A stretch of DNA of 64,000 nt, taken from contig CATNEN010000001.1 in the NCBI GenBank assembly GCA_950097015.1, positions 25,420,001 to 25,484,000 on the forward strand. The letters run 5' to 3'. Made by a program: the position numbers and the translations under genes. The stretch is from Macrostomum hystrix (Eukaryota > Animalia > Platyhelminthes). Below are positions 13,483-63,942 of this stretch, piece after piece (position 1 is the stretch's first letter; each line of letters opens with the position of its first letter). The notes beneath the pieces are model-generated. The model saw nothing but the letters and a program-made list of their open reading frames with translations. It searched no databases and was not told where the DNA came from.

Positions 13483-13781
13483 TCGATCCCATCGACTTGT
13501 CCCTTCAGCAAACACATTGGCAATGAATTAACAGCTCAACAACATAACATAGACGGTGGCAGTGCCAGAGCATTCGGCTGCATCTTCAGCAACGGTGGAG
13601 GAGTCAGGAAGTGACAAATTTCAATGCGCGATGCACACTACTCGAACGCTTGGATGTTAGTAGCATAAAACGCATACGCCATGCAGAAATGAGATCAGAC
13701 CCACTCACCGCTTCTCCATTTCTAGTGAGCACAGACAGGCTGGATTTCACTCCAATGCTGGAGAATTCTCCGAATGGCGAC

Positions 13782-21111: not shown

Positions 21112-24100
21112 ATGGCTGCTGGAGGCCCAAGCGATGACCAGGTGAGGGACTCAGAGAGCCAATCACAGTGCTCTTTCTATTGCTCAAATATTGACTGAAC
21201 TTTCCCACTGACTGTTGCATTGCCGACTCTCAGCTGCAGAGACTCGCCCAGCTGACCATCCAGGGCGACTTTGGCCAGGTGCGCCAACTGGCGACGCGAC
21301 AGCTGGTGGCAAGCACAGATGACAGCGGATGGACCATCTTGATGCTGGTGGCCGACGCTCCAGATACTCCCGTGGAGGCTGAGAAGTGCGTATTGTACTT
21401 ATTTGAGTTGGACGCGGATCCGGCAGCGCGTGACGGGGCCGGCGACACGGCTGCGCACGTGGCAGCCAGACGAAACCACCTGCGGCTGCTGGCGCTGCTG
21501 CCGTTCGATGCGAAGTGGCTGCAGAACAAGCGAGGCGCGACACCGCTGATGGAGGCAGCTCGGGCCGGCAGCTGGCGAATCGCGAAACACCTGCTGCATC
21601 TGCTGAGGCAGTGGAGGTATAATGAGTATAATAAGAGAGGCAACTCGAAGAGGGATCAGCTGCTCGGCCTGCAGGACAGCGAAGGTCGAACCGCGCTCGA
21701 CCTGGCGAGGCAGGGCGGCCACTCAGAGCTGGCCAGCGACATTGAGCGGTGAGTGATCAGTTCGCTGCTGTGCCCGATTCGCAGCATTGCAGCTGGGGTG
21801 GCCTGAGCATTGGTCTCAGCCCAGCCAATCAGAGCCAGTCAGCTGAAGCCGCTGTTGTTTGCATGGCCCAATGGGATTTCATTTCGGTGCAGTCGCTTTT
21901 GCATTTCTAGTTTAGCAACTCGAGCTAACTAATAAATCGATGGGAGATCACTCAAATGGGAACTTGTCAATCTGGGAAAGCATTAGAGATGCAGGGGAAT
22001 TTTGTGCTGCAACTGAATTCCCCATGTGTTTGTGTCTCCCACGGGCAGTTACACTTCCCCAATATTCTGATTGGCTGAGATTTCACTTCCCTTAACTTGG
22101 AGATTCGCAAATATGCAATCAGCAAATCTCCAATGGCTGGCATTTCTCATGCCGCAGTGCTTTCTCGACCCCAACACTTTGCTGATGCAGCGAATTTGAG
22201 GCTGAGTAAAAATGAGCTTGTCCGAAACTGCTGCCTGTTTGTGTGCGATGAGAATTTCGCATTTGATTTCTTCTGCTTTGCAGGGAGATGCGGCTGCGAG
22301 TGGATGAAAATGGCTGGATCTCCGGCCTGACAGACTCGGTGAGTGGCATCTGGGGTGCCGATGTGGGTGCAGATGAGCAGCTGTGCTCAAATTCGCCACT
22401 CGCCTTTGCAGGAGGAGGCAGAGCGAGAGGAACTGGAGCGGCTGGCCTGGGCGGGCGACTCGGCGGGGCTGCGGCGAGCGGCGACCCGCGGCAACTGCGA
22501 CCTGCCGGACAGGAGGGGTCGGACAGCGTTAATGCATGCAGCTCGGAACATCCAGTGCTCTGACGGGGCTCTGTGGCAGCATCTGCTGCAGCTCGGGGAC
22601 CCCACCTGTGCTAGTGTGGGTGCTCACAGTTGCCTGCACTGGGCAGCCGAGGCTGGCAATCCTGCCGCAGTCTCCCAGCTGCTCCATGCCGGAGCCTCCG
22701 CCAACGCCAGGGATTGGAGGGAATCCACGCCCCTCATGCGGGCAGCCTGGGCGCCCCCCGCCACCGCCGCCGCAGTCGGTCGGGCTCTGCTGGCCGCAGG
22801 GTCGGACTGGAGCCTGAAGGACAGAGATGGCAAGACTGCGCTGGACTGGGCCACAGAGTATGGAAAGAGCGAACTGGCCGAGCTGCTGCGTGGGTGAGTT
22901 GCCATGGCGACTGAGAATGTCTCTCATCTTGCATTATCGCACTGAGTGGGTGCAGGTCGCAGTGTTTCACTGATCAGAGTCAAAGTGGGTTGCAATTTTT
23001 AGCCAAAATATTTTCTGTCCAATCAGAGTTTTGCCAGCCTCTGCCACTCAAGCAGTTTGCAGTGCTGCAAATAATAGCATTAATATTATCAGTGGGAATA
23101 AGGCTTTCCATTTGCTGCTTTTTATAGGTGAAAATGCGCACTGCGTACCGTGCGGGCCGCTCTCACAAAGCCCAATTTTCAGTGCGCAATTCAGAGTTTG
23201 TGCAGTCCGAAGCAACTTCTGCTTTCGACGCTGTGGAAATTGGGGCTTGTGAAACGGCTGAGCATCGCTTCTGGAGGGGTGGGCGTGCGGGCGCTCTCCC
23301 ATTGGCTGGCGGCCTCCCCGCCCCGTCTCTCCCATTGGCTGGCTGCCTCCGCCAGTCAGTTTTAGCGTTGCGCTGTTGCGCTGTTGCGCTGCTATTGCTG
23401 GAAAACTGACACAGCTGAGCTAAAATGCACAGTTTAGTTACAGTTTGCTGCTACTTGAACTGTTAATTGGCATTGGCATTAATTACTGCAGTGCCTTCAG
23501 CAAACACAAGCAAAGGACAGGACACACTCAGGACAAACACAAGTCAGCAATCAGACGCAGACTAAAGTGCATTGAATGAAAAACAGTCTGGCTGACTGTG
23601 GCTCACTTGGCGCAAGTGACGGCCTACAGGGCGGCTGTTAAGAAGAGGCCACCCACAGAGTGGGGGTCGAGGGCCGCACAGGCAAATGAAAATGTGCGGA
23701 GAGGCCCCCAGCGAAGGCAGGGACTGTGGAGTGGGGTGGGTGGCCCCGCCTCTCTGCCCCCTCGGCACCTCGTCACCTCGCAGCCAGCGAGTGGCAATTC
23801 TGCCCATTCCGCTGACTCCTGAGCACACACGCACACAGATGCCTTCAATAAAGTTGACAGCTGTCCAAATACTTTTGCGGAGTCTGTCTCGGTTTCCTCA
23901 CCTTCTTCAGTGATTTGCCACTGGCCAAGTGAGCCTCACTGATCAAAAACTGTCAGTTGAAGAGCGGTAGAAGGGAAGTGGGATATTTTTGTATTCACTT
24001 TTCCCCACGGCATGCCAGGGCATGAATCTGACATTCTCCTTCGGTAGCATGTTTTGAGACAGGGGAGATGAGACAGGGAGATGAGACAGGGAGATGAGAC

Positions 24101-30100: not shown

Positions 30101-33100
30101 GATGCAATAAGGGATGAATGTGATTGGCTGATTGATGCAATAAGGGATGAATATGATTGGCTGATTGATGCAATAAGGGATGAATGTGATTGGCTGATTG
30201 ATGCAATAAGGGATGAATATGATTGGCTGATTGATGCAATAAGGGATGAAAGTGATTGGCTGATTGATGCAATAAGGGATGAATGTGATTGGCAGACTGG
30301 CGTAATAAGGGATGAATGTGATTGGCTGATTGACGCATTAAGGGATGAATATGATTGGCTGATTGACGCAATAAGGGATGAATGTGATTGGCTGATTGAT
30401 GCAATAAGGGATGAATATGATTGGCTGATTGATGCAATAAGGGATGAAAGTGATTGGCTGATTGATGCAATAAGGGATGAATGTGATTGGCAGACTGGCG
30501 TAATAAGGGATGAATGTGATTGGCTGATTAACGCAATAAGGGATGAATGTGATTGGTTGATTGATGCAATAAGGGATGGATATCATTAGCTGATTGATGC
30601 AATAAGGGATGAATGTGATTGGCAGACTGGCGTAATAAGGGATGAATGTGATTGGCTGATTGACGCATTAAGGGATGAATATGATTGGCTGATTGACGCA
30701 ATAAGGGATGAATGTGATTGGCTGATTGATGCAATAAGGGATGAATATGATTGGCTGGTTGATGCAATAAGGGATGAATATGATTGGCTGGTTGATGCAA
30801 TAAGGGATGAATGTGATTGGCTGATTGATGCAATAAGGGATGAATATCATTAGCTGATTGATGCAATAAGGGATGAATGTGATAAGCTTATTGATGCAAT
30901 AAGGGATGAATGTGATTGGTGTTGTGACGTAGCGAACTTTAATATCGGTGCTGTGGGCCGAGTGCTAGTATTGCTTAATGGTGATTGCGCAATGTACATG
31001 CCAATGACACCTCTTTAATGTACATGCATTGGTTGAGTAAATATATAAAGCATTGCACGCCCGTTTTGGAGGGCTGGAGCTTTTAAGTGGAATTGACACT
31101 GGCTGACTTCTCTCGCTCACTACATTTGGCGTCGCAAGCAGGATCGTCCGATGCGGCTTGAAGCTCTTCTCGCTCATGACGCACGCAGAACAATTGGCTG
31201 ATTGATGCAATAAGGGATGAATGTGATAAGCTTATTGATGCAATAAGGGAAGAATGTGATTGGCTGATTGAAGCAATAAGTGCATGTCTCATTGTATCAT
31301 TTTGGCTTGAGTGTCTATGATAAAAACATATCAAAATCACACAATATTAGTGATGAACGGCTATTCGTGCACGAATGATTTGACCTCGGTGCAAATGCAT
31401 TCGTGCACTCATAGCAGTTCATTACTTATACATTGTAACCTCCCTCAGTGTTTAAGGTGAGTTCGTTTGTATATTCTTAGAAACATTAATAGTCCGGAAA
31501 ATCTCTGTCACTCTAGTAACTGCTCATTTACCTGCTCAATCGAGGTGCTTAGTTTTATAATATATTTTTAGTTTAATCAAAATTGAACGCAATAAATCTA
31601 AATAGATAATAAAGCGAAGTGCAGCAATAGACAAATGCAATGAAGTTAACTATTCTGAATTTCTATCAGTCTTTATGAGTATCTGCTTTGTACCCGCATT
31701 GCAGCACTGTTCGAGTGGACCACATCGATGAGCTTTCGAGCGACGATGAGCGTTCGACGCCACCAGGGTGAGTCACAGGACTTGAGCACTCTGCTCTTTT
31801 GGCTTGTTCTGCGCATTCTTTGATTGCCTCTTAAATAACAGCTTTGAAATTTGCAACAGCCCGCAGTACCCATCGTATCGTCCTCCTGAAAGCCCCCGGC
31901 ACGCTGTTGAGCCCATATGGTGTGCACTTTTACATTCTGGAAGGGCGGCACGTGGTTTGGCTTTAGTTTAATGATGATAATCGTAGTCAGTGATGGCATT
32001 GGGTGTCAGTGATGGGATTGGGTGTAAGTGATGGCATTGGGTGTCAGTGATGGCATTGGGTGTCAGTGATGTGATTGGGTGTCAGTGATGGGATTGGGTG
32101 TCAGTGATGGGATTGGGTGTAAGTGGTGGGATTGGGTGTCAGTGATGTGATTGGGTGTCAGTGATGTGATTGGGTGTCAGTGATGTGATTGGGTGTCAGT
32201 GATGGGATTGGGTGTCAGTGATGGCATTGGATGTCAGTGGTGGGATTGGGTGTCAGTGATGTGATTGGGTGTCAGTGATGTGATTGGGTGTCAGTGATGT
32301 GATTGGGTGTCAGTGATGGCATTGGGTGTCAGTGATGGCATTGGATGTCAGTGGTGGGATTGGGTGTCAGTGATGGCATTGGATGTCAGTGGTGGGATTG
32401 GGTGTCAGTGATGGCATTGGGTGTCAGTGATGGCATTGGGTGTCAGTGATGGCATTGGATGTCAGTGGTGGGATTGGGTGTCAGTGATGGCATTGGATGA
32501 CAGTGATGGCATTGGATGTCAGTGGTGGGATTGGGTGTCAGTGATGGCATTGGATGACAGTGATGGCATTGGATGTCAGTGGTGGGATTGGGTGTCAGTG
32601 ATGGCATTGGATGGCAGTGATGGCATTGGATGTCAGTGGTGGGATTGGGTGTCAGTGATGGCATTGGATGACAGTGATGGCATTGGATGTCAGTGGTGGG
32701 ATTGGGTGTCAGTGATGGCATTGGGTGTCAGTGATGGCATTGGGTGTCAGTGATGGCATTGGGTGTCAGTGATGGCATTGGATGTCAGTGGTGGGATTGG
32801 GTGTCAGTGATGGCATTGGGTGTCAGTGATGGGATTGGGTGTCAGTGATGGGATTGGGTGTCAGTGATGTGATTGGGTGTCAGTGATGTGATTGGGTGTC
32901 AGTGATGGGATTGGGTGTCAGTGATGTGATTGGGATTCAGTGATGGGATTGGGTGTCAGTGATGAGATTGGGTGTCAGTGATGAGATTGGGTGTCAGTGA
33001 TGAGATTGGGTGTCAGTGATGTGATTGGGTGTCAGTGATGGGATTGGGTGTCAGTGATGGGATTGGGTGTCAGTGATGTGATTGGGATTCAGTGATGGGA

Positions 33101-34083
33101 TTGGGTGTCAGTGATCTGATTGGGTGTCAGTGATGGGATTAAGCCGCTAAGATTTCTTGCCTTGTCTGAAACCGGTTGCCGCATTCCAGGACTCAGGATG
33201 ACTATTACCGGGTGACTGACCCACAAGGCTTCTGCCTCATCATCAACATCAAGAACTACAATTCTGACAGCGCCATCACGGTCAACCTTGAAGTTCGCGA
33301 GGGCGCGCAGCACGACGTGGAGCGAGTGAGGCAGGTGTTCCAGGAGCTGCGCTTTGTGGTTGACTATCAGGAGGACCTCACCGCTGAGCAGATTGACGAC
33401 TATCTCAATGAAAAGAAGAAGTCAAAGGAGCTGGCCGGCCACGGCAGCTTCGTCTGCTTCCTGATGGCCCACGGCAGCCACGACTGCATCTATGGCATCG
33501 ACTGGCGCCCGTTTGAAATCCAGAAGCTGACGGAAAAGTTCGAGGTAAGTGGACAATGGCACTCAGTAATGAACACTTTCAAGAGCTGAACACACTCTGC
33601 TGCAATACGCCTCCACCCAAGGCCTCAATCTGCCGGAGTCTGGCTGGCAAGCCGAAGATCTTCTTCATCCAGGCCTGCCGAGGTCCCCGCGTTGACACAG
33701 TGGCGCCACGAAACACCGACCTGAGGACCGACGACGCCCCGGTGCTAAACCCGACACTTCACCCGGCTAAGGCGGACTTTCTAGTCTGCTTTGCCAACAC
33801 TCCGGGCAAATTTGCCTTCAGAGATGTCAGATGGGGCTCCATCTTCGTACAGACTCTGTGCGACTTCATTACGAAGGACTTCAGCGTGCATGACCTGGTG
33901 CACATCATGGTCAGAGTGAACCGACACATTCAGAATAATCCGATCCGCATTGATAACAAGGTGTACCATGTGGTGCCACAGATGGTTGCCCAGCTGTCCT
34001 ATAAGATCTGCCTCGACCCCAGCAGGGCCCTCAACCCACAGAGGCCAAGCACCGATGGTTCCCGCGTGTGCGAACTGCTCTAG
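21112..34083 (+). CDS. Ankyrin-repeat-caspase fusion protein, copy A (~687 aa predicted)
   Basis: Predicted exons are 21112-21141, 21234-21748 (ANK), 22284-22338, 22412-22893 (ANK), 24419-24460, 31705-31767, 31860-31919 (weak donor), 33190-33544 and 33622-34083. All introns are GT-AG and phases match, giving a 2064-nt open frame. The ANK exons end at GTGAGT donors, with no in-exon stop. The caspase exon has a phase-2 acceptor and no ATG of its own. Confidence 0.72.
21234..21748 (+). CDS. Ankyrin-repeat exon 1, copy A
   Basis: Ankyrin motifs GWTILM, GDTAAHVAA, GATPLMEAARAG and GRTALDLARQGG. Confidence 0.9.
22412..22893 (+). CDS. Ankyrin-repeat exon 2, copy A
   Basis: Ankyrin motifs GRTALMHAA, SCLHWAAEAGN, STPLMRAA and GKTALDWATEYG. 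Confidence 0.9.
23570..23842 (-). mobile_element. 5'-truncated SINE-like repeat sharing a core with the SINE at 6874
   Basis: 23790-23840 is the near-exact reverse complement of 7109-7158; the paralog is at ~55115-55385. Confidence 0.55.
24055..24275. repeat. 14/15-bp purine-rich minisatellite (GAGATGAGACAGGG[G])
   Basis: Tandem units. Confidence 0.9.
25167..29656 (-). mobile_element. Ty3/Gypsy LTR retrotransposon with a truncated 5' LTR
   Basis: The 3' LTR at 25167-25321 (155 bp, TGTTGT...ACAACA) is preceded by the polypurine tract GAAAGGGAAGGTGAA. Only 22 bp of the 5' LTR remain (29635-29656), followed by the primer-binding site TGGCATCGC. The element is absent from copy B. Confidence 0.92.
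25508..29503 (-). CDS. Gag-Pol polyprotein (1331 aa)
   Basis: Single ORF with a gag CCHC knuckle (CHVCGKANHFGRMC), protease LVDSGA, RT YIDD, RNase H (ACDSS...YSASEREAL) and integrase (HHCC, TDGGPQF, VERFN). Domain order is PR-RT-RH-IN. Confidence 0.96.
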   Translation of the reverse strand: MTSDSNSAEAPRISVSPPDQFLPQPGRPARPWKEWKALFENYLLAAGYDTLPEARRRALLLHCFGAEGQRVFAAVAATKRPSPTELAATVAILDEQFGAKVNVVAERHKFRQRSQRPGEKIADFVAALYALAGSCEFRDMMEEMIRDQIVEKVSDRRIRERLLIEDGLTLQKAVTLSQQWETSIAEASAIETEGAAAAGAQLEEEVKRVRLQPDRKNTGQGRPDRESCSKCGGGHNRRARCPAEGKSCHVCGKANHFGRMCRSQGAKVAEVMDESGQAVYMVRGASSPDIRCRLKVHGIWLNLLVDSGAKVSILSERTFRKLGNRSPLQPSTKKLIAYNGKAIDVVGEAVLSVSYRGQLVPFFCFTVVRQGSDIMGTDLMQHLSFQVVDKDGDLVRTVEKTAELPVWLAERFKPLTQGLGRIRGFEHRPRLNPAVPPVAQSLRRIPLSIKDKVQAEIDQLLEDDIIEEIQASEWISNLVIVPKPDGKIRVCNDLRCPNKAIVPDKQPLPTFEELTTEFKGSTVFTKLDLNSSYLQLELAEDRRDLTAFITEKGLYRYKRVCYGLNSAPAAFQKVLSKILHGCSGTLHYIDDIVVHAANEAEHLRRLTTVLDKLLAHGVTLNASKCQWAAETVQFLGYIVSARGLQPMQSNVEDIEAVPEPQNAEAVASFLGMVKFYSNFLHNLSDIAEPLLLLLRKEQPWNWTTDCQKAFWRLKKMVVSPTCLRFFSPDDKIIVACDSSAHALGAVLMQDDSAGVRRPVAFASRTLSATERKYSASEREALACIFACERWHYFLFGRRFELHTDHQALTTLLTAQGSGHRPLRLHRWADRLLAYDFQVCHVPGKKNIVPDFLSRHGALEGKCPRQSEEDSTELQVNAVLLSGALEIVSPSELAEASLQDPVINDAVTMTLQGWPNSIKQLKPELQPFWRMRTQLALWNDGKCLANGTRAVIPASLREKTLQLAHFGHLGVSKMKQHCRDAVWWPQIDQHIEEFVRHCEACLLSEKNFKPPKTVLTPTKWPTRPWEELQLDIFGELHSAPNSCRFILVLYDLHSKWPEAACMSTVTSADVIDALTTWFSRWGLPKSIKTDGGPQFVSGDFEDFLQRCGIRHRQSPHYHPQGNAAVERFNRFLKDGLKTHLEEGYDFKDAVKTLLWSYRATPHALTGVSPAELMTGRKISTPLTALQPRTTARHRLAASIKRRQQRVFDQLNTTRRPPPTFIVGDWVRVKRPFARGKLSSRLSEPRQISRIASATTVILSDGSRWHVDNCVRVPRPAGALPHWPAPAPSAAGTAAEAATAADPARQQQPAQTAIRVSSRPRAPPQWYGEIVTH
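31986..33140. repeat. 19-bp minisatellite (GTGTCAGTGATGGSATTGG)
   Basis: Tandem units in the intron before the caspase exon; copy A only. Confidence 0.95.
33190..34083 (+). CDS. Caspase (peptidase C14A) p20+p10 exons, copy A
   Basis: Motifs GFCLIIN, R-EGAQHD, FVCFLMAHG (catalytic His), KPKIFFIQACRG (catalytic Cys), ADFLVCF and AFR...GSIFVQTLC. Intron at 33545-33621. Confidence 0.95.
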
Positions 34084-34187: not shown

Positions 34188-34852
34188 TGTCTATTGTCTA
34201 CAGATTGGTATCTGTTGTCTACAGATTGGTGTCTATTGTCTAAAGATTGGTGTCTATTGTCTAAAGATTGGTGTCTATTGTCTACAGATTGGTGTCTATT
34301 GTCTAAAGATTGGTGTCTATTGTCTATAGATTTGTATCTATTGTCTACAGATTGGTGTCTATTGTCTAAAGATCGGTGTCTGTTTTCTAAGGATTGGTGT
34401 CTATTGTCTACAGATTGGTGTCTATTGTCTAAAGATTGGTGTCTATTGTCTATAGATTTGTATCTATTGTCTACAGATTGGTGTCTATTGTCTAAAGATC
34501 GGTGTCTGTTTTCTAAGGATTGGTGTCTATTGTCTAAGGATTGGTGTCTATTGTCTACAGATTGGTGTCTATTGTCTAAAGATTGGTGTCTGTTTTCTAA
34601 GGATTGGTGTCTATTGTCTAAGGATTGGTGTCTATTGTCTAAGGATTGGTGTCTATTGTCTACAGATTGGTGTCTATTGTCTAAAAATTGGTGTCTATTG
34701 TCTACAGATTGGTGTCTATTGTCTAAAAATTGGTGTCTATTGTCTACAGATTGGTGTCTATTGTCTAAAAATTGGTGTCTATTGTCTACAGATTGGTGTC
34801 TATTGTCTACAGATTGGTGTCTATTGTCTACAGATTGGTGTCTATTGTCTAC
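34188..34852. repeat. 21-bp minisatellite (GTCTATTGTCTACAGATTGGT)
   Basis: Tandem units. Confidence 0.95.
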
Positions 34853-35242
34853 AAAATACAGTTTATTATTTGTTGATGTCTATTTTCTATCGGTAGATAT
34901 TTATTGTCTATTGTGTCTTATCTGTCATCTAATTAATATATTGGCTGTGTATGTATAATATATATAGATTATCTACTTGTTTTTATAATTAACACCTATT
35001 TTACTCTTGTAACTTAGTAGCCGAGTTGCAGACTGTGTTCCAGCTGCTGCTCAAACCTCATCTGTTAGACGCCTGAACTATACCTGATACGTGAGATATA
35101 CCTGATAACTGAGATATACCTGATAACTGAGATATACCTAATACCTGAAATACCAGTGAACTGACACGCCATTGCCACGATTTCCATTCACACAAAATAC
35201 GCCTTGCCCTGCTCTCCCTTTCATTTTTGTGGGACTGCAGTG

Positions 35243-44530: not shown

Positions 44531-44889
44531 GAATTATTTAAAATATCTTTTCATCCCGCCCGCAGTCCAGTAGGACATGAGTTTAAACAATAAACAATTT
44601 CAAATTTAGATTCTGAAGACTTATATTGTTTAGCCAAGTGACACACCCGCCAATTACAATTTACTGCACAGTGAATACACTTTGAATTGCTTAAAAATTA
44701 TTGTGCTTCAAATAGCAGAAAAATCTGTACATCAATACTTGTGAGTAGTATGTGACATGCAAATATATTCATTGTTGCCCTGGCAACCAAATTTGCAAAG
44801 CTGCTCCAATCACGGACAGCAATCACGCATATAAACTATTTGTGATTATTGTGTTCTAGTCTACTGTCTTATCAATTGTTAGATTTATC

Positions 44890-47800
44890 TCATGTTTTTA
44901 TGTCACTCTCTCATGTCTTCTGTCACCCTCTCATATCTTCTGTCACTCTCTCATGTCTTTTGTCACTCTCTCATATCTTCTATCACTCTCACATGTCTTT
45001 TGTCACTCTCTCATATCTTCTGTCACTCTCTCATATCTTCTGTCACTCTCTCATGTCTTTTGTCACTCTCTCATATCTTTTATCACTCTCTCATGTCTTC
45101 TGTCACTCTCTCATGTCTTCTGTCACTCTCTCATATCTTCTGTGACTCTCCCATGTCTTCTGTCACTCTCTCATATCTTCTGTCACTCTCTCATGTCTTC
45201 TGTCACTCTCTCATGTCTTTTGTCACTCTCTCATGTCTTCTGTCACTCTCTCATGTCTTCTGTCACTCTCTCATGTCTTCTGTCACTCTCTCATATCTTC
45301 TGTCACTCTCTCTTATCTTCTGTCACTCTCTCATGTCTTCTGTCACTCTCTCATATCTTCTGTCACTCTCTCATATCTTCTCTCACTCTCTCATGTCTTC
45401 TGTCACTCTCTCATGTCTTCTGTCACTCTCTCATGTCTTCTGTCACTCTCTCATGTCTTCTGTCACTCTCTCTTATCTTCTGTCACTCTCTCATATCTTC
45501 TGTCACTCTCTCATATCTTCTCTCACTCTCTCATGTCTTCTGTCACTCTCTCATGTCTTCTGTCACTCTCTCATGTCTTCTGTCACTCTCTCATGTCTTC
45601 TGTCACTCTCTCATATCTTCTGTCACTCTCTCATGTCTTCTGTCACTCTCTCATATCTTCTGTCACTCTCTCATATCTTTTATCACTCTCTCATGTCTTA
45701 TGTCACTCTCTCATATCTTCTGTCACTCTCTAATTTCTTCTGTCACTCTCCCATGTCTTCTGTCACTCTCTCATGTCTTCTGTCACTCTCTCATATCTTC
45801 TGTCACTCTCTCATATCTTTTATCACTCTCTCATGTCTTATGTCACTCTCTCATGTCTTTTGTCACTCTCTCATATCTTCTATCACTCTCACATGTCTTT
45901 TGTCACTCTCTCATATCTTCTGTCACTCTCTCATATCTTCTGTCACTCTCTCATGTCTTTTGTCACTCTCTCATATCTTTTATCACTCTCTCATGTCTTC
46001 TGTCACTCTCTCATGTCTTCTGTCACTCTCTCATATCTTCTGTGACTCTCTCATGTCTTCTGTCACTCTCTCATATCTTCTGTCACTCTCTCATGTCTTC
46101 TGTCACTCTCTCATGTCTTTTGTCACTCTCTCATGTCTTCTGTCACTCTCTCATGTCTTCTGTCACTCTCTCATGTCTTCTGTCACTCTCTCATATCTTC
46201 TGTCACTCTCTCTTATCTTCTGTCACTCTCTCATGTCTTCTGTCACTCTCTCATATCTTCTGTCACTCTCTCATATCTTCTCTCACTCTCTCATGTCTTC
46301 TGTCACTCTCTCATGTCTTCTGTCACTCTCTCATGTCTTCTGTCACTCTCTCATGTCTTCTGTCACTCTCTCTTATCTTCTGTCACTCTCTCATATCTTC
46401 TGTCACTCTCTCATATCTTCTCTCACTCTCTCATGTCTTCTGTCACTCTCTCATGTCTTCTGTCACTCTCTCATGTCTTCTGTCACTCTCTCATGTCTTC
46501 TGTCACTCTCTCATATCTTCTGTCACTCTCTCATGTCTTCTGTCACTCTCTCATATCTTCTGTCACTCTCTCATATCTTTTATCACTCTCTCATGTCTTA
46601 TGTCACTCTCTCATATCTTCTGTCACTCTCTAATTTCTTCTGTCACTCTCCCATGTCTTCTGTCACTCTCTCATGTCTTCTGTCACTCTCTCATATCTTC
46701 TGTCACTCTCTCATATCTTTTATCACTCTCTCATGTCTTATGTCACTCTCTCATATCTTCTGTCACTCTCTAATTTCTTCTGTCACTCTCCCATGTCTTC
46801 TGTCACTCTCTCATGTCTTCTGTCACCCTCTCATATCTTCTCTCACTCTCTCATATCTTCTGTCACTCTCTCATATCTTCTGTCACCCTCTCATGTCTTC
46901 TGTCACTCTCTCATGTCTTCTGTCATTTCTCATATCTTCTGTCACTCTCTCATATCTTCTGTCACTCTCTCATATCTTCTGTCACTCTCTCATGTCTTCT
47001 GTCACTCTCTCATATCTTCTGTCACTCTCTCATGTCTTCTGTCACCCTCTCATATCTTCTGTCACTCTCTCATATCTTCTGTCACTCTCTCATATCTTCT
47101 GTCACTCTCTCATGTCTTCTGTCACTCTCTCATATCTTCTGTCACTCTCTCATATCTTCTGTCACTCTCTCATATCTTCTGTCACTCTCTCATGTCTTCT
47201 GTCACTCTCATATCTTCTGTCACTCTCTCATGTCTTCTGTCACTCTCTCATATCTTCTGTCACTCTCTCATGTCTTCTGCTGTCACTCTCTCATGTCTTC
47301 TGTCACTCTCTCATATCTTCTGTCACTCTCTCATATCTTCTGTCACTCTCCCATATCTTCTGTCACTCTCTCATGTCTTCTGTCACTCTCTCATATCTTC
47401 TGTCACTCTCTCATATCTTCTGTCACTCTCCCATATCTTCTGTCACTCTCTCATGTCTTCTGTCACTCTCTCATATCTTCTGTCACTCTCTCATGTCTTC
47501 TGTCACTCTCTCATATCTTCTGTCACTCTCTCATATCTTCTGTCACTCTCTCATATCTTCTGTCACTCTCTCATGTCTTCTGTCACTCTCATATCTTCTG
47601 TCACTCTCTCATGTCTTCTGTCACTCTCTCATATCTTCTGTCACTCTCTCATGTCTTCTGTCACTCTCTCATATCTTCTGTCACTCTCTCATGTCTTCTG
47701 TCACTCTCCCATGTCTTCTGTCACTCTCTCATGTCTTCTGTCACTCTCTCATATCTTCTGTCACTCTCTCATATCTTCTGTCACTCTCTCATGTCTTCTG

Positions 47801-47928
47801 TCACTCTCTCATATATTCTGTCACTCTCTCATATCTTCTGTCACTCTCTCATGTCTTCTGTCACTCTCCCATGTCTTCTGTCACTCTCTCATGTCTTCTG
47901 TCACTCTCTCATATATTCTATCACTCCC
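44890..47928. repeat. 20-bp minisatellite (TGTCACTCTCTCATRTCTTC), copy B, ~150 units
   Basis: Tandem units, including an internal 900-bp duplication. Confidence 0.95.
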
Positions 47929-52616: not shown

Positions 52617-55600
52617 ATGGCTGCTGGAGGCCCAAGCGATGACCAGGTGAGGGCCAATCACAGTGCTCTTTCTATTGCTCAAATATTGACTGAACTTGCC
52701 CACTGACTGTTGCATTGCCGACTCTCAGCTGCAGAGACTCGCCCAGCTGACCGTCCAGGGCGACTTTGGCCAGGTGCGCCAACTGGCGACGCGACAGCTG
52801 GTGGCAAGCACGGATGGCAGCGGAAGGACCATCTTGATGGTGGTTGCCGACGCTCCACAGACTCCCGTGGAGGCTGAGAAGTGCGTATTGTACTTATTTG
52901 AGTTGGACGCGGATCCGGGAGCGCGTGATGGGGCGGGCGACACGGCTGCGCACGTGGCAGCCAGACGAAACCACCTGCGGCTGCTGGCGCTGCTGCCGTT
53001 CGATGCGAAGTGGCTGCAAAACGAGCGAGGCGCGACACCGCTGATGGAGGCAGCTCGGGCCGGCAGCTGGCGAACCGCGAAACACCTGCTGCATCTGCTG
53101 AGGCAGCAGAGGTATAATGAGTATGAGGAGAGAGGCAACTCGAAGAGGGATCAGCTGCTCGGCCTGCAGGACAGCGAAGGTCGAACCGCGCTCGACCTGG
53201 CGAGGCAGGGCGGCCACTCAGAGCTGGCCAGCGACATTGAGCGGTGAGTGATCAGTTCGCTGCTGTGCCCGATTCAGCTGGGGTGGCCTGAGCATTGGTC
53301 TCAGCCCAGCCAATCAGAGCCAGTCAGCTGAAGCCGTTGTTGTTTGCATGGCCCAATGGGATTTCATTTCGGTGCAGTCGCTTTTGCATTTCTAGTTTAG
53401 CAACTCGAGCTAACTAATAAATCGATTGGAGATCACTGAAATGGGAACTTGTCAATCTGGGAAAGCATTAGAGATGCAGGGGAGTTTTGTGCATGCAACT
53501 GAATTCCCCATGTGTTTGTGTCTCCCACGGGCAGTTTCCCTTCCCCAATATTCTGATTGGCTGGGATTGACCCTTAACTTGGAGATTTGCAAATAGGCAA
53601 CCAGCAAATCTCCAATGGCCAGTGCACAGATTTGTGTGTGCCACATTGGCAGCACTGAGAACTGGCATTTCTCATGCCGCAGTGCTTTCTCGACCCCAAC
53701 ACTTTGCTGATGCAGCGAATTTGAGGCTGAGTAAAAATGAGCTTGTCTGAAACTGCTGCCTGTTTGTGTGCGATGAGAATTTCGCATTTGATTTCTTCTG
53801 CTTTGCAGGGAGATGCGGCTGCGACTGGGTGATGAATATGGCTTTGGATTTAAATGCATCTCTGGCCTGACAGCCTCGGTGAGTGGCATCTGGGGTGCCG
53901 ATGTGGGTGCAGATGAGCAGCTGTGCTCAAATTCTCCACTCGCCTTTGCAGGAGGAGGCAGAGCGAGAGGAACTGCAGCGGCTGGCCGATGCCGGCGACT
54001 CGGCGGGGCTGCGGCGAGCGGCGACCCGCGGCAACTGCGACCTGCCGGACAGGTGGGGTCGGACAGCGTTAATGCATGCAGCTCGGAACATCCAGTGCGC
54101 TGACGGGGCTCTGTGGCAGCATCTGCTGCAGCTCGGGGACCCCACCTGTGCTGCTGTGAATGCTTTCAGTTGCCTGCACCATGCAGCCGGGACTGGCAAT
54201 TCTGCCGCAGTCTCCCAGCTGCTCCATGCCGGAGCCTCCGCCAACACCAGGGGTTGGATTGAATTCACGCCCCTCATGTGGGCAGCCTGGAATGCGCCCC
54301 CCGCCACCGCCGCCGCAGTCGGTCGGGCTCTGCTGGCCGCAGGGTCGGACTGGAGCCTGCAGGACGATTATGGCAGGACTGCGCTGGATTTGGCCTCAGA
54401 GAAGGGAAAGAGCGAACTGGCCGAGCTGCTGCGTGGGTGAGTTGCCATGGCGACAGAGAATGTCTCTCATCTTGCATTATCGCACTGAGTGGGTGCAGGT
54501 CGCAGTGTTTCACTGATCAGAGCCAAAGTGGGTTGCAATTTTTAGCCAAAATATTTTCTGTCCAATCAGAGTTTTGCCCGCCTCTGCCACTCAAGCAGTT
54601 TTGCAGTGCCGTAAATAATAGCATTAATATTATCAGTGGGAATAAAGCTTTCCATTTGCTGCTTTTTATAGGTGAAAATGCGCACTGCGTACCGTGCGGG
54701 CCGCTCTCACAAAGCCCAATTTTCAGTGCGCAATTCAGAGTTTGTGCAGTCCGAAGCAACTTCTGCTTTCGACGCTGTGGAAATTGGGGCTTGTGAAACG
54801 GCTGAGCATCGCTTCTGGAGGGGTGGGTGTGCGGGCGCTCTCCCATTGGCTGGCGGCCTCCCCGCCCCGTCTCTTCCATTGGCTGGCGGCCTCCGCCAGT
54901 CAGTTTTAGCGTTGCGCTGTTGCGCTGTTGCGCTGCTATTGCTGGAAAACTGACACAGCTGAGCTAAAATGCACAGTTTAGTTACAGTTTGCTGCTACTT
55001 GAACTGTTAATTGGCATTGGCATTAATTACTGCAGTGCCTTCAGCAAACACAAGCAAAGGACAGGACACACTCAGGACAAACACAAGTCAGCAATCAGAC
55101 GCAGACTAAAGTGCATTGAATGAAAAACAGTCTGGCTGACTGTGGCTCACTTGGCGCAAGTGACGGCCTACAGGGTGGCTGTTAAGAAGAGGCCACCCAC
55201 AGAGTGGGGGTCGAGGGCCGCACAGGCAAATGAAAATGTGCGGAGAGGCCCCCAGCGAGGGCAGGGACTGTGGAGTGGGGTGGGTGGCCCCGCCTCTCTG
55301 CCCCCTCGGCACCTCGTCACCTCGCAGCCAGCGAGAGGCAATTCTGCCCATTCCGCTTACTCCTGAGCACACACGCACACAGATGCCTTCAATAAAGTTG
55401 ACAGCTGTCCAAATCTTGCGGAGTCTGTCTCGGTTTCCTCACCTTCTTCAGTGATTTGCCACTGGCCAAGTGAGCCTCACTGACCAAAAACTGTCAGTTG
55501 AAGAGCGGTAGAAGGGAAGTGAGATATTTTTGTATTCACTTTTCCCCACCGCATGCCAGGGCAGGAATCTGACATTCTCCTTCGGAAGCGTGTTATGAGA

Positions 55601-58600
55601 CAGGGATGAGACAGGGAGATGAGACAGGGGAGATGAGACAGGGAGATGAGACAGGGGAGATGAGACAGGGAGATGAGACAGGGAGATGAGACAGGGAGAT
55701 GAGACAGGGAGATGAGATAGGGGAGATGAGACGGCGGAGATGGGACGGGAGATGAGACAGGGGAGATGAGATGGCAGAGATGAGACAGGGGAGATGAGAC
55801 GGCGGAGATGAGACGGCGGAGATGAGACAGGGGAGATGGGAGGGAGATGAGACAGGGGAGATGAGACAGGGGAGATGAGATGGCGGAGATGAGACGGCGG
55901 AGATGAGACGGCGGAGATGAGACGGCGGAGATGAGACAGGGGAGATGGGAGGGAGATGAGACAGGGAGATGTGACGGTGGAGATGCGACAGGGGAGTTGA
56001 GACATTACCAAAAGTATTACCATTGGCATCGAAATAAAGGCTCATAGAAATAACTAATGTGAAACAGGCAGTCTGGTGTCTCGGGACTTGTTCTCAGCAG
56101 TTTTCTGAGCTTTCTCTTGAGTAAATTCCCTCATTTCTGCCTACAGGTACGAAGGCAAGAAGTATTTTGACGCGCCTACGCAGCCTCGGTGAGTTCGATT
56201 GCGGTTTCTTAGAAAATACCACAGCCTCTTCTTATGCCTTGCTTGTCTTGCTTTTCCTGGATTAATATGATTGGCTGATTGACGCAATAAGGGATGAATG
56301 TGATTGGCTGATTGATGCAATAAGGGATGAATGTGATTGGCTGATTGATGCAATAAGGGATGAATGTGATTGGCTGATTGATGCAATAAGGGATGAATGT
56401 GATTGGCTGATTGATGCAATAAGGGATGAATGTGATTGGCTGATTGACGCAATAAGGGATGAATGTGATTGGCTGATTGACGCAATAAGGGATGGATGTG
56501 ATTGGCTGATGGATGCAATAAGGGATGAATATGATTGGCTGATTGATGCAATAAGGGATGAATGTGATTGGCTGGTTGATGCAATAAGGGATGAATATGA
56601 TTGGCTGATTGATGCAATAAGGGATGAATGTGATTGGCTGATTGATGCAATAAGGGATGGATGTGATTGGCTGATTGGTGCAATAAGGGATGAATGTGAT
56701 TGGCTGATTGATGCAATAAGGGATGAATGTGATTGGCTGATTGATGCAATAAGGGATGAATGTGATTGGCTGATTGATGCAATAAGGGATGAATGTGATT
56801 GGCTGATTGATGCAATAAGGGATGAATGTGATCGGCTGATTGATGCAATAAGGGATAAATGTGATTGGCTGATTGATGCAATAAGGGATGAATGTGATTG
56901 GCTGATTGACGCATTAAGGGATGAATATCATTGGCTGATTGATGCAATAAGGGATGAATGTGATTGGCCGATTAATGCAATAAGGGATGGATATCATTGG
57001 CTGATTGATGCAATAAGGGATGAATGTGATTGGCTGATTGATGCAATAAGGGATGAATATGATTGGCTGATTCATGCAATAAGGGATGGATATCATTAGC
57101 TGATTGATGCAATAAGGGATGAATGTGATTGGCAGACTGGCGTAATAAGGGATGAATGTGATTGGCTGATTGATGCAATAAGGGATGAATATGATTGGCT
57201 GATTGATGCAATAAGGGATGAATGTGATTGGCTGATTGATGCAATAAGGGATGAATGTGATTGGCTGATTGATGCAATAAGGGATGAATATGATTGGCTG
57301 ATTCATGCAATAAGGGATGGATATCATTAGCTGATTGATGCAATAAGGGATGAATGTGATTGGCAGACTGGCGTAATAAGGGATGAATGTGATTGGCTGA
57401 TTGACGCATTAAGGGATGAATATGATTGGCTGATTGATGCAATAAGGGATGAATGTGATTGGCTGATTGATGCAATAAGGGATGAATGTGATTGGCCGAT
57501 TGATGCAATAAGGGATGGATATCATTGGCTGATTGATGCAATAAGGGATGAATGTGATTGGCTGATTGATGCAATAAGGGATGAATATGATTGGCTGATT
57601 CATGCAATAAGGGATGGATATCATTAGCTGATTGATGCAATAAGGGATGAATGTGATTGGCAGACTGGCGTAATAAGGGATGAATGTGATTGGCTGATTG
57701 ATGCAATAAGGGATGGATGTGATTGGCTGATTGATGCAATAAGGGATGAATGTGATTGGCTGATTGATGCAATAAGGGATGGATGTGATTGGCTGATTGA
57801 TGCAATAAGGGATGAATGTGATTGGCTGATTGATGCAATAAGGGATGAATATGATTGGCTGATTGATGCAATAAGGGATGAATGTGATTGGCTGATTGAT
57901 GCAATAAGGGATGGATATCATTGGCTGATTGATGCAATAAGGGATGAATGTGATTGGCTGATTGATGTAATAAGGGATGGATATCATTGGCTGATTGATG
58001 CAATAAGGGATGGATATGATTTGCTGATTGATGCAATAAGGGATGGATATCATTGGCTGATTGATGCAATAAGGGATGGATATGATTGGCTGATTGATGC
58101 AATAAGGGATGGATATCATTGGCTGATTGACGCAATAAGGGATGAATATGATTGTGTAGTCTGGCTTTTGGTGCGCGTTTTCACATAGCCTAGGCCTATT
58201 TGCTCCGATCTTAGACCATAGAAACGTGCACTCGTTTCAACTATTTGTCTCAAATTGTGCATGTCTCATTGTATCATTTTGGCTTGAGTGTCTATGATAA
58301 AAACATATCAAAATCACACAATATTAGTGATGAACGGCTATTCGTGCACGAATGATTTGACCTCGGTGCAAATGCATTCGTGCACTCATAGCAGTTCATT
58401 ACTTATACATTGTAAACTACCTGAGTGTTTAAGGTGAGTTCGTTTGTATTTTCTTAGAAACATTAATAGTCCGGAAAATCTCTGTCACTCTAGTAACTGC
58501 TCATTTACCTGCTCAATCGAGGTGCTTAGTTTTATAATATATTTTAGTTAGAGTCAAAATTTAACGCAATAAATCTAAATAGATAATAAAGCGAAGTGCA

Positions 58601-61151
58601 GCAATAGACAAATGCAAAGAAGTAAACTATTCTGAATTTCTATCAGTCTTCATGAGTATCTGCTTTGTACCCGCATTGCAGCACTGTTCGAGTGGACCAC
58701 ATCGCTGAGCTTTCGAGCGACGATGAGCCTTCGACGCCACCAGAGTGAGTCACAGGACTTGAGCACTCTGCTCTTTTGGCTTGTTCTGCGCATTCTTTGA
58801 TTGCCTCTTAAATAACAGCTTTGAAATTTGCTGCAGCCGGCAATTCCCACTGAGACGTTTGAAATTTGCAAAATGATAAGCTGATTGATGCAATAAGGGA
58901 TGAATGTGATTGGCTGATTGATGCAATAAGGGATGAATATGATTGGCTGATTGATGCAATAAGGGATGAATGTGATAAGCTGATTGATGCAATAAGGGAT
59001 GAATATGATTGGCTGATTGATGCAATAAGGGATGAATATGATTGGCTGATTGATGCAATAAGGGATGGATGTGATTGGCTGATTGATGCAATAAGGGATG
59101 AATATGATTGGCTGATTGATGCAATAAGGGATGGATGTGATTGGCTGATTGATGCAATAAGGGATGAATATGATTGGCTGATTGACGCATTAAGGGATGA
59201 ATATGATTGGCTGATTGATGCAATAAGGGATGGATGTGATTGGCTGATTGATGCAATAAGGGATGAATATGATAAGCTGATTGATGCAATAAGGGATGGA
59301 TATTATTGGCTGATTGATGCAATAAGGGATGAATATGATAAGCTGATTGATGCAATAAGGGATGGATGTGATTGGCTGATTGATGCAATAAGGGATGGAT
59401 GTGATTGGCTGATTGATGCAATAAGGGATGAATATGATTGGCTGATTGATGCAATAAGGGATGAATATGATTGGCTGATTGATGCAATAAGGGATGGATG
59501 TGATTGGCTGATTGACGCATTAAGGGATGAATATGATTGGCTGATTGATTTATGTTGTTGGACAAACTTCGACACCAACATTTCGTGCGAATCAAACCTC
59601 AAACCCAACAGCAAAGTTGTCAGTGTACAATTGAAATCTGCTGCTCGAGGATCTGCTGCTCAAGGATCTGCTGCGGCTGGGAAGTGAGTATTTTTGCTGA
59701 GATTTTAAGACTTCTTTAATTGGTTTCAGCGTCAAAATTTACTAAATTATTATCGTTTTCACATAGCCTAGGCCTATTTGCTCCGATCTTAGACCATAGA
59801 AACGTGCACTCGTTTCAACTATTTGTCTCAAATTGTGCATGTCTCATTGTAAACTACCTGAGTGTTTAAGGTGAGTTCGATTGCATTTTCTTAGAAACAT
59901 TAATAGTCTGGAAAATCTCTGTCACTCTAGTAACTGCTCATTTACCTGCTCAATTGAGGTGCTGAGTTTACTCGGCACCTCGAGGACCTGCTGCGGCTGG
60001 GATGTGAGCTTGAGTTGATTGATGGTCAGGGCACTTCTGCTCGAGGATCTGCTGTCTCATTGCTTCATTGACCATTCCAGTCTCACTGAGCAGTTCTACC
60101 CGGTGACGGACCCTCAAGGATTCTGCCTCATCATCAACATCAGCAAGTACAAGGCTGGCAGTGACATCACTTTCAGCCTGGAGGAGCGTCAGGGCTCGGA
60201 GCGGGATGTCCAGCGAGTGACGCAGCTGTTTAAGATGCTACGATTTTCCGTCATCGTGAAGACGAACCTGACTGCCGAGGAGATCGACAACTGCCTTCAC
60301 GAGGTGAAGACATCGAAGGAGCTGGTTGATCACGGCAGCTTCGTCTGCTTCCTGATGGCTCACGGCAGCCAGGACTGCATCTACGCCAGCAACGGAGTGC
60401 CCTGCGACATCCGCAAGCTGACTGAGAAGTTCCAGGTGAGAGCACTGGTATTTTTATCACAATGTAAGAGTTCAGGTCATGACTTAGCACTTCATGTAGA
60501 CATATGTTGAAGCCCCACTTCATTAGTGCGCTTATTTTGTTGAAAAATTCATTGCCGCATAAATTAGGCTGAGTAATGTACATTAGTGAGACAGACGGCC
60601 TTCTCATGTGCGTGTGTTGAAAATTGAGGTGGCGGCTACTGAAATAGACTAGAAAGTACATCAGGTATCGGTGCGACTGTTGCTGTCCTGCAGTCTTTGA
60701 AGGCCTCATCGAACCCGAACCTCAGGCCGATGTCTGCGAAAAGCTGTCGAGGAAGCCGAAGATCTTCTTCATCCAGGCCTGCCGCGGCAGCCGCCGTGAT
60801 GGAGTGTCCGCCCACGGCACCCGGGTAGCAACGGACTCGCGTCACGTACCCGTGCTCAACTCCGAGCTCAGTCCCGCTAGGGGGGACTTCCTGCTCTGCT
60901 TTGCCAACACCGAGAACTCCGTGGCCTACAGGGACCTGGACACCGGCTCCTTTTACGTGCAGACAATCTGCGACTTCATCAAGAGGCACTTCAAGCACGA
61001 GCACCTGGTGGACATCATGACTAGTGTGAACTTCTACATTCAGAACAACCCAGTTCGCATTGGCAACCAGCGATTCCATATGGTGCCTCAGATAGTGACT
61101 CAGCTCTCCAAGAAGGTCTGCCTGGACCCAGCCAGAGCTCAACGCTTGTAG
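52617..61151 (+). CDS. Ankyrin-repeat-caspase fusion protein, copy B (~685 aa predicted)
   Basis: Predicted exons are 52617-52646, 52729-53243, 53809-53878, 53952-54436, 56147-56188, 58682-58744, 59612-59683, 60081-60435 and 60726-61151. All introns are GT-AG and phase-compatible, giving a 2058-nt open frame. Confidence 0.72.
52729..53243 (+). CDS. Ankyrin-repeat exon 1, copy B
   Basis: Motifs GRTILM, GDTAAHVAA, GATPLMEAA and GRTALDLA. Confidence 0.9.
53952..54436 (+). CDS. Ankyrin-repeat exon 2, copy B
   Basis: Motifs GRTALMHAA, SCLHHAAGTGN, FTPLMWAA and GRTALDLASEKG. Confidence 0.9.
55597..56003. repeat. 14/15-bp purine-rich minisatellite, copy B
   Basis: GAGATGAGACAGGG units. Confidence 0.9.
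56260..58153. repeat. 33-bp minisatellite, copy B (no Gypsy insertion)
   Basis: Same unit as 24537-30920. Confidence 0.95.
58874..59549. repeat. 33-bp minisatellite, extra array in copy B
   Basis: Same unit. Confidence 0.95.
60081..61151 (+). CDS. Caspase (peptidase C14A) p20+p10 exons, copy B
   Basis: Motifs GFCLIIN, R-QGSERD, FVCFLMAHG, KPKIFFIQACRG (in exon 60726-61151), GDFLLCF and AYR...GSFYVQTIC. Confidence 0.95.
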
Positions 61152-62170: not shown

Positions 62171-62625
62171 GTCTATTGTCTACAGTTTGATGTCTGTTGT
62201 CTAAGGATTGGTGTCTATTGTCTACAGTTTGATGTCTGTTGTCTAAGGATTGGTGTCTATTGTCTACAGTTTGATGTCTGTTGTCTAAGGATTGGTGTCT
62301 ATTGTCTACAGTTTGATGTCTGTTGTCTAAGGATTGGTGTCTATTGTCTACAGTTTGATGTCTGTTGTCTAAGGATTGGTGTCTATTGTCTACAGTTTGA
62401 TGTCTGTTGTCTAAGGATTGGTGTCTATTGTCTACAGTTTGATGTCTGTTGTCTAAGGATTGGTGTCTATTGTCTACAGATTCCTGTCTATTGTCTACAG
62501 ATTCCTGTCTGTTGTCTACAGATTGCTGTCTGTTGTCTAAAGATTGGTGTCTATTGTCTAAGGATTGGTGTCTATTGTCTACAGATTGGTGTCTATTGTC
62601 TAAGGATTGGTGTCTATTGTCTACA
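62171..62625. repeat. 21-bp minisatellite with a 42-bp dimeric higher-order unit, copy B
   Basis: GTCTATTGTCTACAGTTTGAT alternates with GTCTGTTGTCTAAGGATTGGT. Confidence 0.95.
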
Positions 62626-63039
62626 AAATACAGTTTATTATTTGTTGATGTCTATTATCTATCGGTAGATATTTATTGTCTATTGTGTCTTATCTGTCAT
62701 CTAATTAATATATTGGCTGTGTATGTATAATATATATAGATTATCTACTTGTTTTTACAATTAACACCTATTTTACTCTTGTAACTTAGTAGCCGAGTTG
62801 CAGACTGTGTTCCAGCTGCTGCTCAAACCTCATCTGTTAGACGCCTGAACTATACCTGATACGTGAGATATACCTGATACGTGAGATATACCTGATAACT
62901 GAGATATACCTGATAACTGAGATATACCTGATAACTGAGATATACCTGATACCTGAAATACCAGTGAACTGACACGCCATTGCCACGTTTTCCATTCACA
63001 CAAAATACGCCTTGCCTTGCTCTCCCTTTCATTTTTGTG

Positions 63040-63942
63040 GGACTGCAGTGGGGATTGTGATGTGGGATTACAGTTTGGTATTGGGATGTGCGATTACAGT
63101 GTGGTATAGGGATGTGGGATTACAGTGTGGTATTGGAATGTGGGATTACAGTGTGGTATTGGGATGTGGGATTACAGTGAGGTATTGGGATGTGGGATTA
63201 CAGTTTGGTATTGGGATGTGCGATTACAGTGTGGTATTGGGATGTGGGATTGCAGTGTGGTATTGGGATGTGGGATTACAGTGTGGTATTGGGATGTGGG
63301 ATTACAGTGAGGTATTGGGATGTGGGATTACAGTGTGGTATAGGGATGTGGGATTGCAGTGTGGTATTGGGATGTGGGATTACAGTGTGGTATTGGGATG
63401 TGGGATTACAGTGTGGTATTGGGATGTGGGATTACAGTGTGGTATTGGGATGTGGGATTACAGTGTGGTATTGGGATGTGGGATTACAGTGTGGTATTGG
63501 GATGTGGGATTACAGTGAGTTATTGGGATGTGGGATTGTAGTGTGGTATTGGGATGTGGGATTGCAGTGTGGTATTGGGATGTGGGATTGCAGTGAGTTA
63601 TTGGGATGTGGGATTACAGTGAGGTATTGGGATGTGGGATTACAGTGTGGTATTGGGATGTGGGATTGCAGTGTGGTATTGGGATGTGGGATTACAGTGT
63701 GGTATTGGGATGTGGGATTACAGTGTGGGATTGTGATGTGGGATTACAGTGTGGTATTGGGATGTGGGATTACAGTGTGGTATTGGGATGTGGGATTGCA
63801 GTGAGTTATTGGGATGTGGGATTACAGTGTGGTATTGGGATGTGGGATTGCAGTGTGGCATTGGGTTGTGGGATTGGGATACGGGATTGTAGTGTGGCTT
63901 TGGGATATGGGATAGCAGTGTAGGATTGGGATGTGGGATTGT
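63040..63942. repeat. 26-bp minisatellite, copy B
   Basis: Same unit as 35243-35665, in a longer array. Confidence 0.95.

Follow-up and report, generated by a model that had tools for sequence, protein, structure and literature searches.

Ankyrin domains commonly recruit partners, and in ILK and TNNI3K, both of which are single conserved genes, ankyrin repeats lie N-terminal to a kinase. Here we describe a family of ankyrin genes in the flatworm Macrostomum hystrix, starting from a window of 64,000 nucleotides (nt) of DNA (assembly GCA_950097015.1, contig CATNEN010000001.1, positions 25,420,001 to 25,484,000 of the forward strand) that holds two copies, A and B, of an exon that we call ANK2. 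This exon, at positions 53952-54436 of the window in copy B, covers the greater part of the second of two ankyrin domains in a cytosolic protein, whose genes form a young, partly tandem, one-contig family. In our best reading, to which we give a probability of about 0.75, diversifying selection acts on the recognition groove of a cytosolic sensor-effector family.

Among described receptors, fungal NOD-like receptors (NLRs) carry highly conserved ANK repeats whose concave face is under positive selection, as in Podospora anserina Pa_3_8560 (Dyrka et al. 2014, PMC4986451). The M. hystrix family resembles the hypervariable ANK repeats (and also the WD and TPR repeats) of these proteins in its near-identical scaffold with selected inner-helix and hairpin positions on the concave face, in the exchange of repeat sequence, in the combinatorial pairing with effectors and in the proposed recognition of non-self. 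The two differ in that fungal repeats are conserved within one protein (>85%) and are polymorphic in number, whereas in M. hystrix the conservation is between paralogs and the five repeats within one ANK2 copy are clearly unlike each other. In addition, the fungal ANK domain lies C-terminal to NACHT/NB-ARC, whereas in M. hystrix it is N-terminal and the host is an animal. A Pfam scan detected no NACHT or NB-ARC domain in ten M. lignano relatives, and the M. hystrix exon chain of start, ANK1, hairpin, ANK2 and effector leaves no room for one. Without a NOD module and without repeat identity inside one protein, the family is not a member of the fungal NLR class, but it appears to work like it.

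In flatworms, an ankyrin pro-domain preceding a caspase defines the ANK caspases, according to the citation of Lee et al. 2014 in PMC11463336 (Genome Biol Evol 2024). They are presented there as essentially a feature of parasitic flatworms, M. lignano being singled out only for a caspase with a kinase-like pro-domain (PMC11463336). Copies A and B share the ankyrin-caspase order, with intact HG and QACRG motifs, with the M. lignano proteins P0030 and P0059. The difference is that PMC11463336 reports no hypervariability, multigene array or kinase sisters, and that most M. hystrix members carry a kinase. The likeness to ILK and TNNI3K lies in an ankyrin domain N-terminal to a kinase; here, however, the kinase is nearest to the STE group, and a whole gene array shows hypervariability in the ankyrin groove. 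Finally, designed ankyrin repeat proteins (DARPins) bind their targets via randomised positions on the concave face (PMC8229355). Like them, the M. hystrix family has a fixed, consensus-like scaffold with diversity at hairpin positions 2, 3 and 5 and helix-1 positions 13 and 14 on the concave face. Unlike the man-made DARPins, the natural family also varies at positions 1 and 10, makes little use of position 33 and has a long insert in repeat 3. The literature searched gives no account, for any animal, of an array of ANK-kinase/caspase genes whose groove is hypervariable.

Results

Divergence between the two copies in the window

The window comprises two units of a ~30-kb tandem duplication, offset by ~31.5 kb and broken up by long minisatellites. 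The two ANK2 exons compared are as follows.

53952..54436, + strand: ANK2 exon of copy B, with helix 1 of repeat 0 and repeats 1-4, ending in phase 2 (GG before the gt donor); identified by Pfam Ank_2, the AlphaFold model and RNA-contig matches
22412..22893, + strand: ANK2 exon of copy A, against which copy B was compared

Both exons are bordered by AG and GT and have a stop-free translation. The original prediction, made from the letters of the window, held that copies A and B differ mainly at ligand-contact positions of the kind randomised in DARPins, that their second helices and following intron are nearly identical, and that diversifying selection or patchy gene conversion is responsible. 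All of the paired peptide motifs that it quoted were found, and both exons lie where it placed them. We observed 36 mismatches over 482 nt (7.47%) and one 3-nt, single-codon indel between the two exons, against 65 differences over 3141 nt (2.07%) of non-coding DNA when the units were aligned and all exons removed (Fisher p 6e-9). The intron after ANK2 is indeed nearly identical in the two copies (20 differences in 1152 nt, 1.7%). The exon changes comprise 23 replacements, the codon indel and 2 synonymous changes. By the Nei-Gojobori method, the non-synonymous and synonymous counts (Nd 33.3, Sd 2.7) correspond to rates of dN 0.101 and dS 0.021 and to a dN/dS of 4.7, well above 1, with dS equal to the non-coding divergence of 0.0207. 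Of the 23 replacements, P/S 84 alone reaches into a second helix in the AlphaFold model. The pattern described in the original prediction is confirmed.

Diversification of the ANK2 exon across the family

A genome search with the exon yielded 15 intact close paralogs (87-93% nucleotide identity), all of them open reading frames, and 2 broken ones. Contig C1 carries every copy, in the interval from 22.1 to 26.9 Mb; a group of eight, all on the + strand, occupies 25.44-25.64 Mb. More distant relatives, with 40-63% amino-acid identity, occur elsewhere in the genome, and the closest proteins to the family are those of Macrostomum lignano (40-79% identity). The 15 ANK2 peptides combine a near-invariant scaffold with variable columns that hold up to 8 residues. 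Their majority consensus over successive repeats (DxxGxTALMxAAxN; DVxAxSCLHxAAxxGN; RxxxESTPLMxAAx; DxxGxTALDLATxxGK) reads like a library design. The sole length change in ANK2 among the paralogs is an 8-residue insert in locus L007. Family-wide intron divergence is approximately 2.8%, a figure that still includes the ANK1 and hairpin exons. All variants seen are germline paralogs in the assembly; contigs are unable to reveal rare somatic variants of the kind made by VLR-like assembly or hypermutation. The two broken copies are L017/L030 (C1:24533763-24534248), with a frameshift inside repeat 3, and L020 (C1:25215016-25215340), which is truncated after ~108 codons; both fit birth-and-death turnover.

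Site models over the collected paralogs, which had been proposed as a check on the A/B comparison, gave a consistent picture. Pairwise, dN exceeded dS in 104 of the 105 comparisons among the 15 ANK2 exons. Codon models were fitted with our own Goldman-Yang likelihood program (F3x4 frequencies, IQ-TREE tree), whose M0 likelihood agrees with that of IQ-TREE. Under M0, omega for ANK2 is 2.74, and omega = 1 is rejected (p 2e-11). Model M2a is favoured over M1a (2ΔlnL = 313.7) and places 20% of codons at an omega of 13.5, with 27 codons at a posterior >0.95. Because recombination can inflate site-model tests, the thirds of the exon were refitted each on its own tree, and every third was significant (likelihood ratio test statistics of 45.7, 118.9 and 112.0). 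Two other exons of the same genes served as internal controls, with an omega of 0.41 for ANK1 and 0.47 for the kinase exon. The diversifying selection proposed from two copies is supported across the family.

Position of the selected sites on the fold

The ANK2 exons were confidently recognised as ankyrin repeats by the profiles of the Pfam clan Ank, PF12796 and PF00023, at curated cut-offs: the exons of the two window copies scored 53.7 and 70.3 bits with Ank_2 (cut-off 27.3; E 3e-14 and 2e-19) and 45.1 and 50.3 bits with Ank (cut-off 21.1). Exons were searched and folded singly, and the model covers the ANK2 exon by itself. The AlphaFold (AF2) model of the ANK2 exon, built on an alignment of 21 paralogs, has a predicted local distance difference test score (pLDDT) of 95.4 and five helix pairs (H2-14/17-23, 39-44/52-61, 74-81/84-92, 107-114/117-129 and 144-150/154-160). 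The best sequence matches of ANK2 among solved structures are DARPin chains, and the HMMER residue-level alignment to a DARPin set our repeat numbering. For the kinase, caspase and ANK1 pieces, an NCBIfam scan returned only generic bacterial kinase and ankyrin matches, far under the cut-offs.

The selected codons lie at sites 9 and 13; 34, 35, 37, 42 and 45; 68, 70, 72, 77, 80 and 81; 99, 101, 102, 103, 110 and 113; and 138, 139, 140, 142, 147, 150, 151 and 153. Apart from one site each at 9, 16 and 32, they occupy repeat positions 1, 2, 3, 5, 10, 13 and 14. The positions reportedly randomised in DARPins by Binz et al. in 2003 are 2, 3, 5, 13, 14 and 33, and such positions are visible as differences among the internal repeats of the aligned DARPin. 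These six positions hold 17 of the 27 selected codons (Fisher 1.7e-10), or 24 of 27 when the same-face positions 1 and 10 are added. The sites fall on hairpin tips and first helices, and none of the 46 second-helix residues is among them. Mapped on a predicted structure, the variable sites agree with the original prediction. W, R, E, D, K and Y are over-represented at the selected sites (W 11.9% vs 0.8%).

Gene structure and transcripts

The ANK2 exon is preceded in each unit by three further exons.

52617..52646, + strand: first coding exon of copy B, encoding MAAGGPSDDQ; preceded at 21 nt by an in-frame stop; no signal peptide
21112-21141: equivalent first coding exon of copy A
52729..53243, + strand: ANK1 exon of copy B, the conserved first ankyrin domain; identified by tblastn with M. 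lignano proteins, a GT..AG joint in RNA contigs and codon models
21234..21748, + strand: ANK1 exon of copy A; identified by tblastn with M. lignano proteins
53809..53878, + strand: hairpin exon of copy B, the DxxGx hairpin preceding ANK2 repeat 0; identified by RNA-contig loose ends and paralog comparison
22284..22338, + strand: hairpin exon of copy A, 15 nt shorter than in copy B, with 5/61 mismatches

The start codons lie at 52617 (copy B) and 21112 (copy A), each with an in-frame stop codon 21 nt before it. The N-terminus, MAAGGPSDDQ, lacks a signal peptide, which points to a cytosolic protein. The hairpin exon (55-70 nt) varies among paralogs in length and at x2, x3 and x5, so that the variable surface reaches beyond 53952-54436.

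For copy B, RNA-derived contigs (runs X2, X5 and X7) contain the GT..AG joint 52646>52729, which is absent from DNA run X1, and the loose ends of such contigs join 53243>53809 and 53878>53952. In addition, RNA-derived X7 contigs, from an independent 2020 study, match the B-specific stretches 53951-54023, 54193-54359 and 54330-54438 with zero differences. These exact matches indicate that assembly error, which the original prediction had named as a possible source of the differences, is not their cause. DNA run X1 has no contig over 53960-54271, a gap that proves nothing, and the RNA-derived runs cover the stretch. Around 53828-53951 of the window, at least 3 hairpin-exon variants are joined to the same ANK2 start in RNA-derived contigs, and several paralogs were therefore transcribed in the sampled worms.

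Effector modules downstream of ANK2

A kinase exon pair lies 0.7-8 kb downstream of ANK2 in 10 paralogs, with its G-loop, HRD, DFG and APE motifs intact. The best matches of the kinase among solved structures are MAP2K7, WNK, TNIK and ASK1, which places it with the STE group. In the kinase exons (L031-L040), M2a puts ~19% of codons at an omega of 2.8 (likelihood ratio test 20.6, p 3e-5) despite average purifying selection. Among the 15 copies, caspase exons are found downstream of A and B only.

60081..60435, + strand: caspase large-subunit exon of copy B, with the HG motif; acceptor phase fits the ANK2 donor; splice inferred, unseen in reads
about 60723-61148: following caspase exon of copy B, with the QACRG motif
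33190..33544, + strand: caspase large-subunit exon of copy A, which lacks its own in-frame ATG; acceptor phase compatible with the ANK2 donor
about 33619-34080: second caspase exon of copy A

The caspase motifs MAHGS and IQACRG are intact in both copies. The ANK2 donor is in phase 2, and all three effector acceptors (caspase at 33190 and 60081, and kinase) complete a Gly codon and stay in frame. The caspase exon of copy A lacks its own ATG and hence needs an upstream exon. M. lignano has one protein in which this ANK module is attached to a kinase (P0011) and two in which it is attached to a caspase (P0030 and P0059), and M. lignano kin match PF00656 with an E of 3e-40. From these features we infer that ANK2 is spliced to the caspase in M. 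hystrix.

The caspase exons of the two copies (A 33190-34080, B 60081-61148) share only ~61% amino-acid identity and 74.6% nucleotide identity over 340 nt. The DNA just upstream of them is 96.6% identical (31280-31872 vs 58257-58849). The contrast could reflect either an effector swap or extremely fast divergence. Downstream of the L007 ANK2 exon (C1:25571645-25575566; loci L007, L043 and L011, also L033 and L041), ANK1 and ANK2 of the next copy follow 3.4 kb on, in an incompatible splice phase and without an intervening effector. At five loci, caspase exons have a distant ANK2-like exon (36-54% identity) as a neighbour, ~0.5-2 kb away, so that ANK-caspase genes exist outside the young array.

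C1:23971510-23972977: distant ANK2-like exon and caspase exon
C7:164684-167627: distant ANK2-like exon and caspase exon
C5:4188944-4190293: distant ANK2-like exon and caspase exon
C38:15429944-15431688: distant ANK2-like exon and caspase exon
C38:22341194-22342517: distant ANK2-like exon and caspase exon

Other features of the window

Minisatellite arrays with periods of ~20, 33, 21 and 26 bp occupy introns and spacers, at unequal lengths in units A and B, and are possible substrates for unequal exchange.

44888-47926, 56259-58154, 58870-59549, 62171-62625 and 63036-63940: minisatellite arrays
12812-13484, 29656-30919 and 34188-34853: minisatellites of copy A

Also within the long intron downstream of ANK2, at 54835-54900 and 23290-23350, a CCATTGGCTGGCGGCCTCC-like motif (an inverted CCAAT box) occurs as a direct repeat, with GC-rich DNA after it. 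The repeat is conserved in copies A and B and could be an internal promoter.

Discussion

The scaffold of ANK2, including the second helices, the helix-1 core and the introns, is held near-identical across copies. We propose that positive diversifying selection has driven the groove residues apart (hairpin positions 1, 2, 3 and 5 and helix-1 positions 10, 13 and 14 of the five successive repeats), so that each copy would present a distinct binding surface. Exchange among paralogs reshuffles these groove variants. After ANK2, a splice-compatible phase would allow an interchangeable effector, which is an STE-like kinase for the majority of copies but a caspase for A and B. The groove would bind rapidly changing ligands, whether pathogen, non-self or conflict-derived, and binding would activate the attached kinase or caspase. 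The comparison with immune and allorecognition receptors is one of analogy. A more specific version, in which the Macrostomum germline holds a "natural DARPin library" of NOD-less cytosolic innate sensors whose hypervariable groove would recognise changing proteins of foreign or conflict-derived origin and turn on an exchangeable kinase or caspase directly, is put forward tentatively, with the odds somewhat against it.

Several points weigh against selection on a recognition groove. The site models were fitted with our own program rather than with PAML or HyPhy, and tests of this type can be inflated by recombination, which does occur in this family; the pairwise dN/dS counts need no tree and are independent of this inflation. 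Multi-nucleotide changes are frequent at the variable ANK2 codons. The surface position of the selected sites is deduced from the DARPin alignment and from secondary structure. The sequenced line is inbred, and the variation seen is among paralogs and not among alleles. No RNA contig bridged the junction between ANK2 and an effector, so that the exon spliced after ANK2 is not shown by reads, and no effector exon lies downstream of ANK2 in L007 (2.9 kb, to the next copy), L011 or L013 (10 kb); these three may be sensor-only genes or decaying copies.

The selection signature itself is silent on the ligand, and it would look the same if the driver were conflict within the species, the groove tracking partner-derived sperm or seminal proteins or selfish genetic elements. 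M. hystrix practises hypodermic insemination, and a cytosolic protein would suit this explanation. No link of the genes to reproductive tissue is seen, however, and cell-autonomous defence is at least as good a match for an effector that is a caspase or a stress-type kinase. We regard conflict within the species as unlikely to be the driver.

It is less probable still that the copies are adaptors that direct the kinase or caspase to different endogenous substrates, with no arms race involved. Partner recruitment is common for ankyrin domains and the effectors are conserved (omega 0.47), both of which are compatible with such neofunctionalisation. An omega of ~13 at 20% of codons and up to 8 residues per site, between copies whose introns are only 2-3% apart, argue otherwise, and the recurrent reuse of variants fits continuing diversification better than a few settled specificities.

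A very improbable explanation is that patchy gene conversion or mosaic recombination made the clustered differences without selection. Exchange itself has good support. The ANK2 exon alignment rejects the trees of the upstream and downstream flanks (approximately unbiased (AU) test, 6e-5 and 4e-5), and the upstream flank rejects the ANK2 exon tree (AU 0.005). Homoplasy in the exon is high at all distances. Of the 25 codons at which A and B disagree, 17 have both of their states represented again elsewhere in the family, and only 4 are unique to each copy, which means that A and B are not simple sisters separated by 33 new substitutions. Taken together, the alignments indicate that the family shares and reshuffles a pool of variants and that paralog exchange is real. 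However, conversion moves synonymous and non-synonymous changes alike, and exchange alone therefore cannot yield a dN far above dS, as seen in the A/B counts of 33 vs 2.7 and in all but one of the paralog pairs. Variable codons alternate with invariant ones (68, 70, 72), a pattern that would require tracts of ~3 nt and that rules out tracts copied from divergent donors; the potential divergent donors, at ~70% DNA identity, would also leave synonymous scars. The pairwise homoplasy index (PHI) test found no significant recombination inside the ANK2 exon (p 0.12). The gene conversion offered in the original prediction thus stands as exchange among paralogs, given the conflict between trees, and is contradicted as the sole cause by the excess of dN over dS.

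Least probable of all is that the pattern stems from relaxed constraint or decay of the copies, or is an artefact of assembling or polishing a multi-copy region. Such an explanation could draw on the 2 broken copies among 17 (the L017 frameshift and the L020 truncation) and on an assembly that is haplotype-purged and polished (PMC10468722), but is contradicted by an omega far above 1 on one face of the fold with invariant scaffold codons, by 15 open frames and by RNA-derived contigs of another study that reproduce the B-specific codons exactly.

Non-vertebrate animals are thought to rely on germline-diversified receptors, of which few families are known, with leucine-rich repeat, immunoglobulin, lectin and scavenger-receptor type domains. 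Selection on the groove of the M. hystrix proteins suggests an addition to these, and the family appears to be an animal system in which an ankyrin groove is the variable surface. Because selection has left an exceptionally strong and clean signal, and because the outputs are modules as simple as a kinase or a caspase, the proposal is directly testable. The family also extends the flatworm "ANK caspases" to a free-living species and offers a plausible purpose for their pro-domain, namely that of a sensor. Lastly, its 15 natural variants on one scaffold form a panel for ligand screens and a check of which ankyrin positions tolerate diversity and make use of it.

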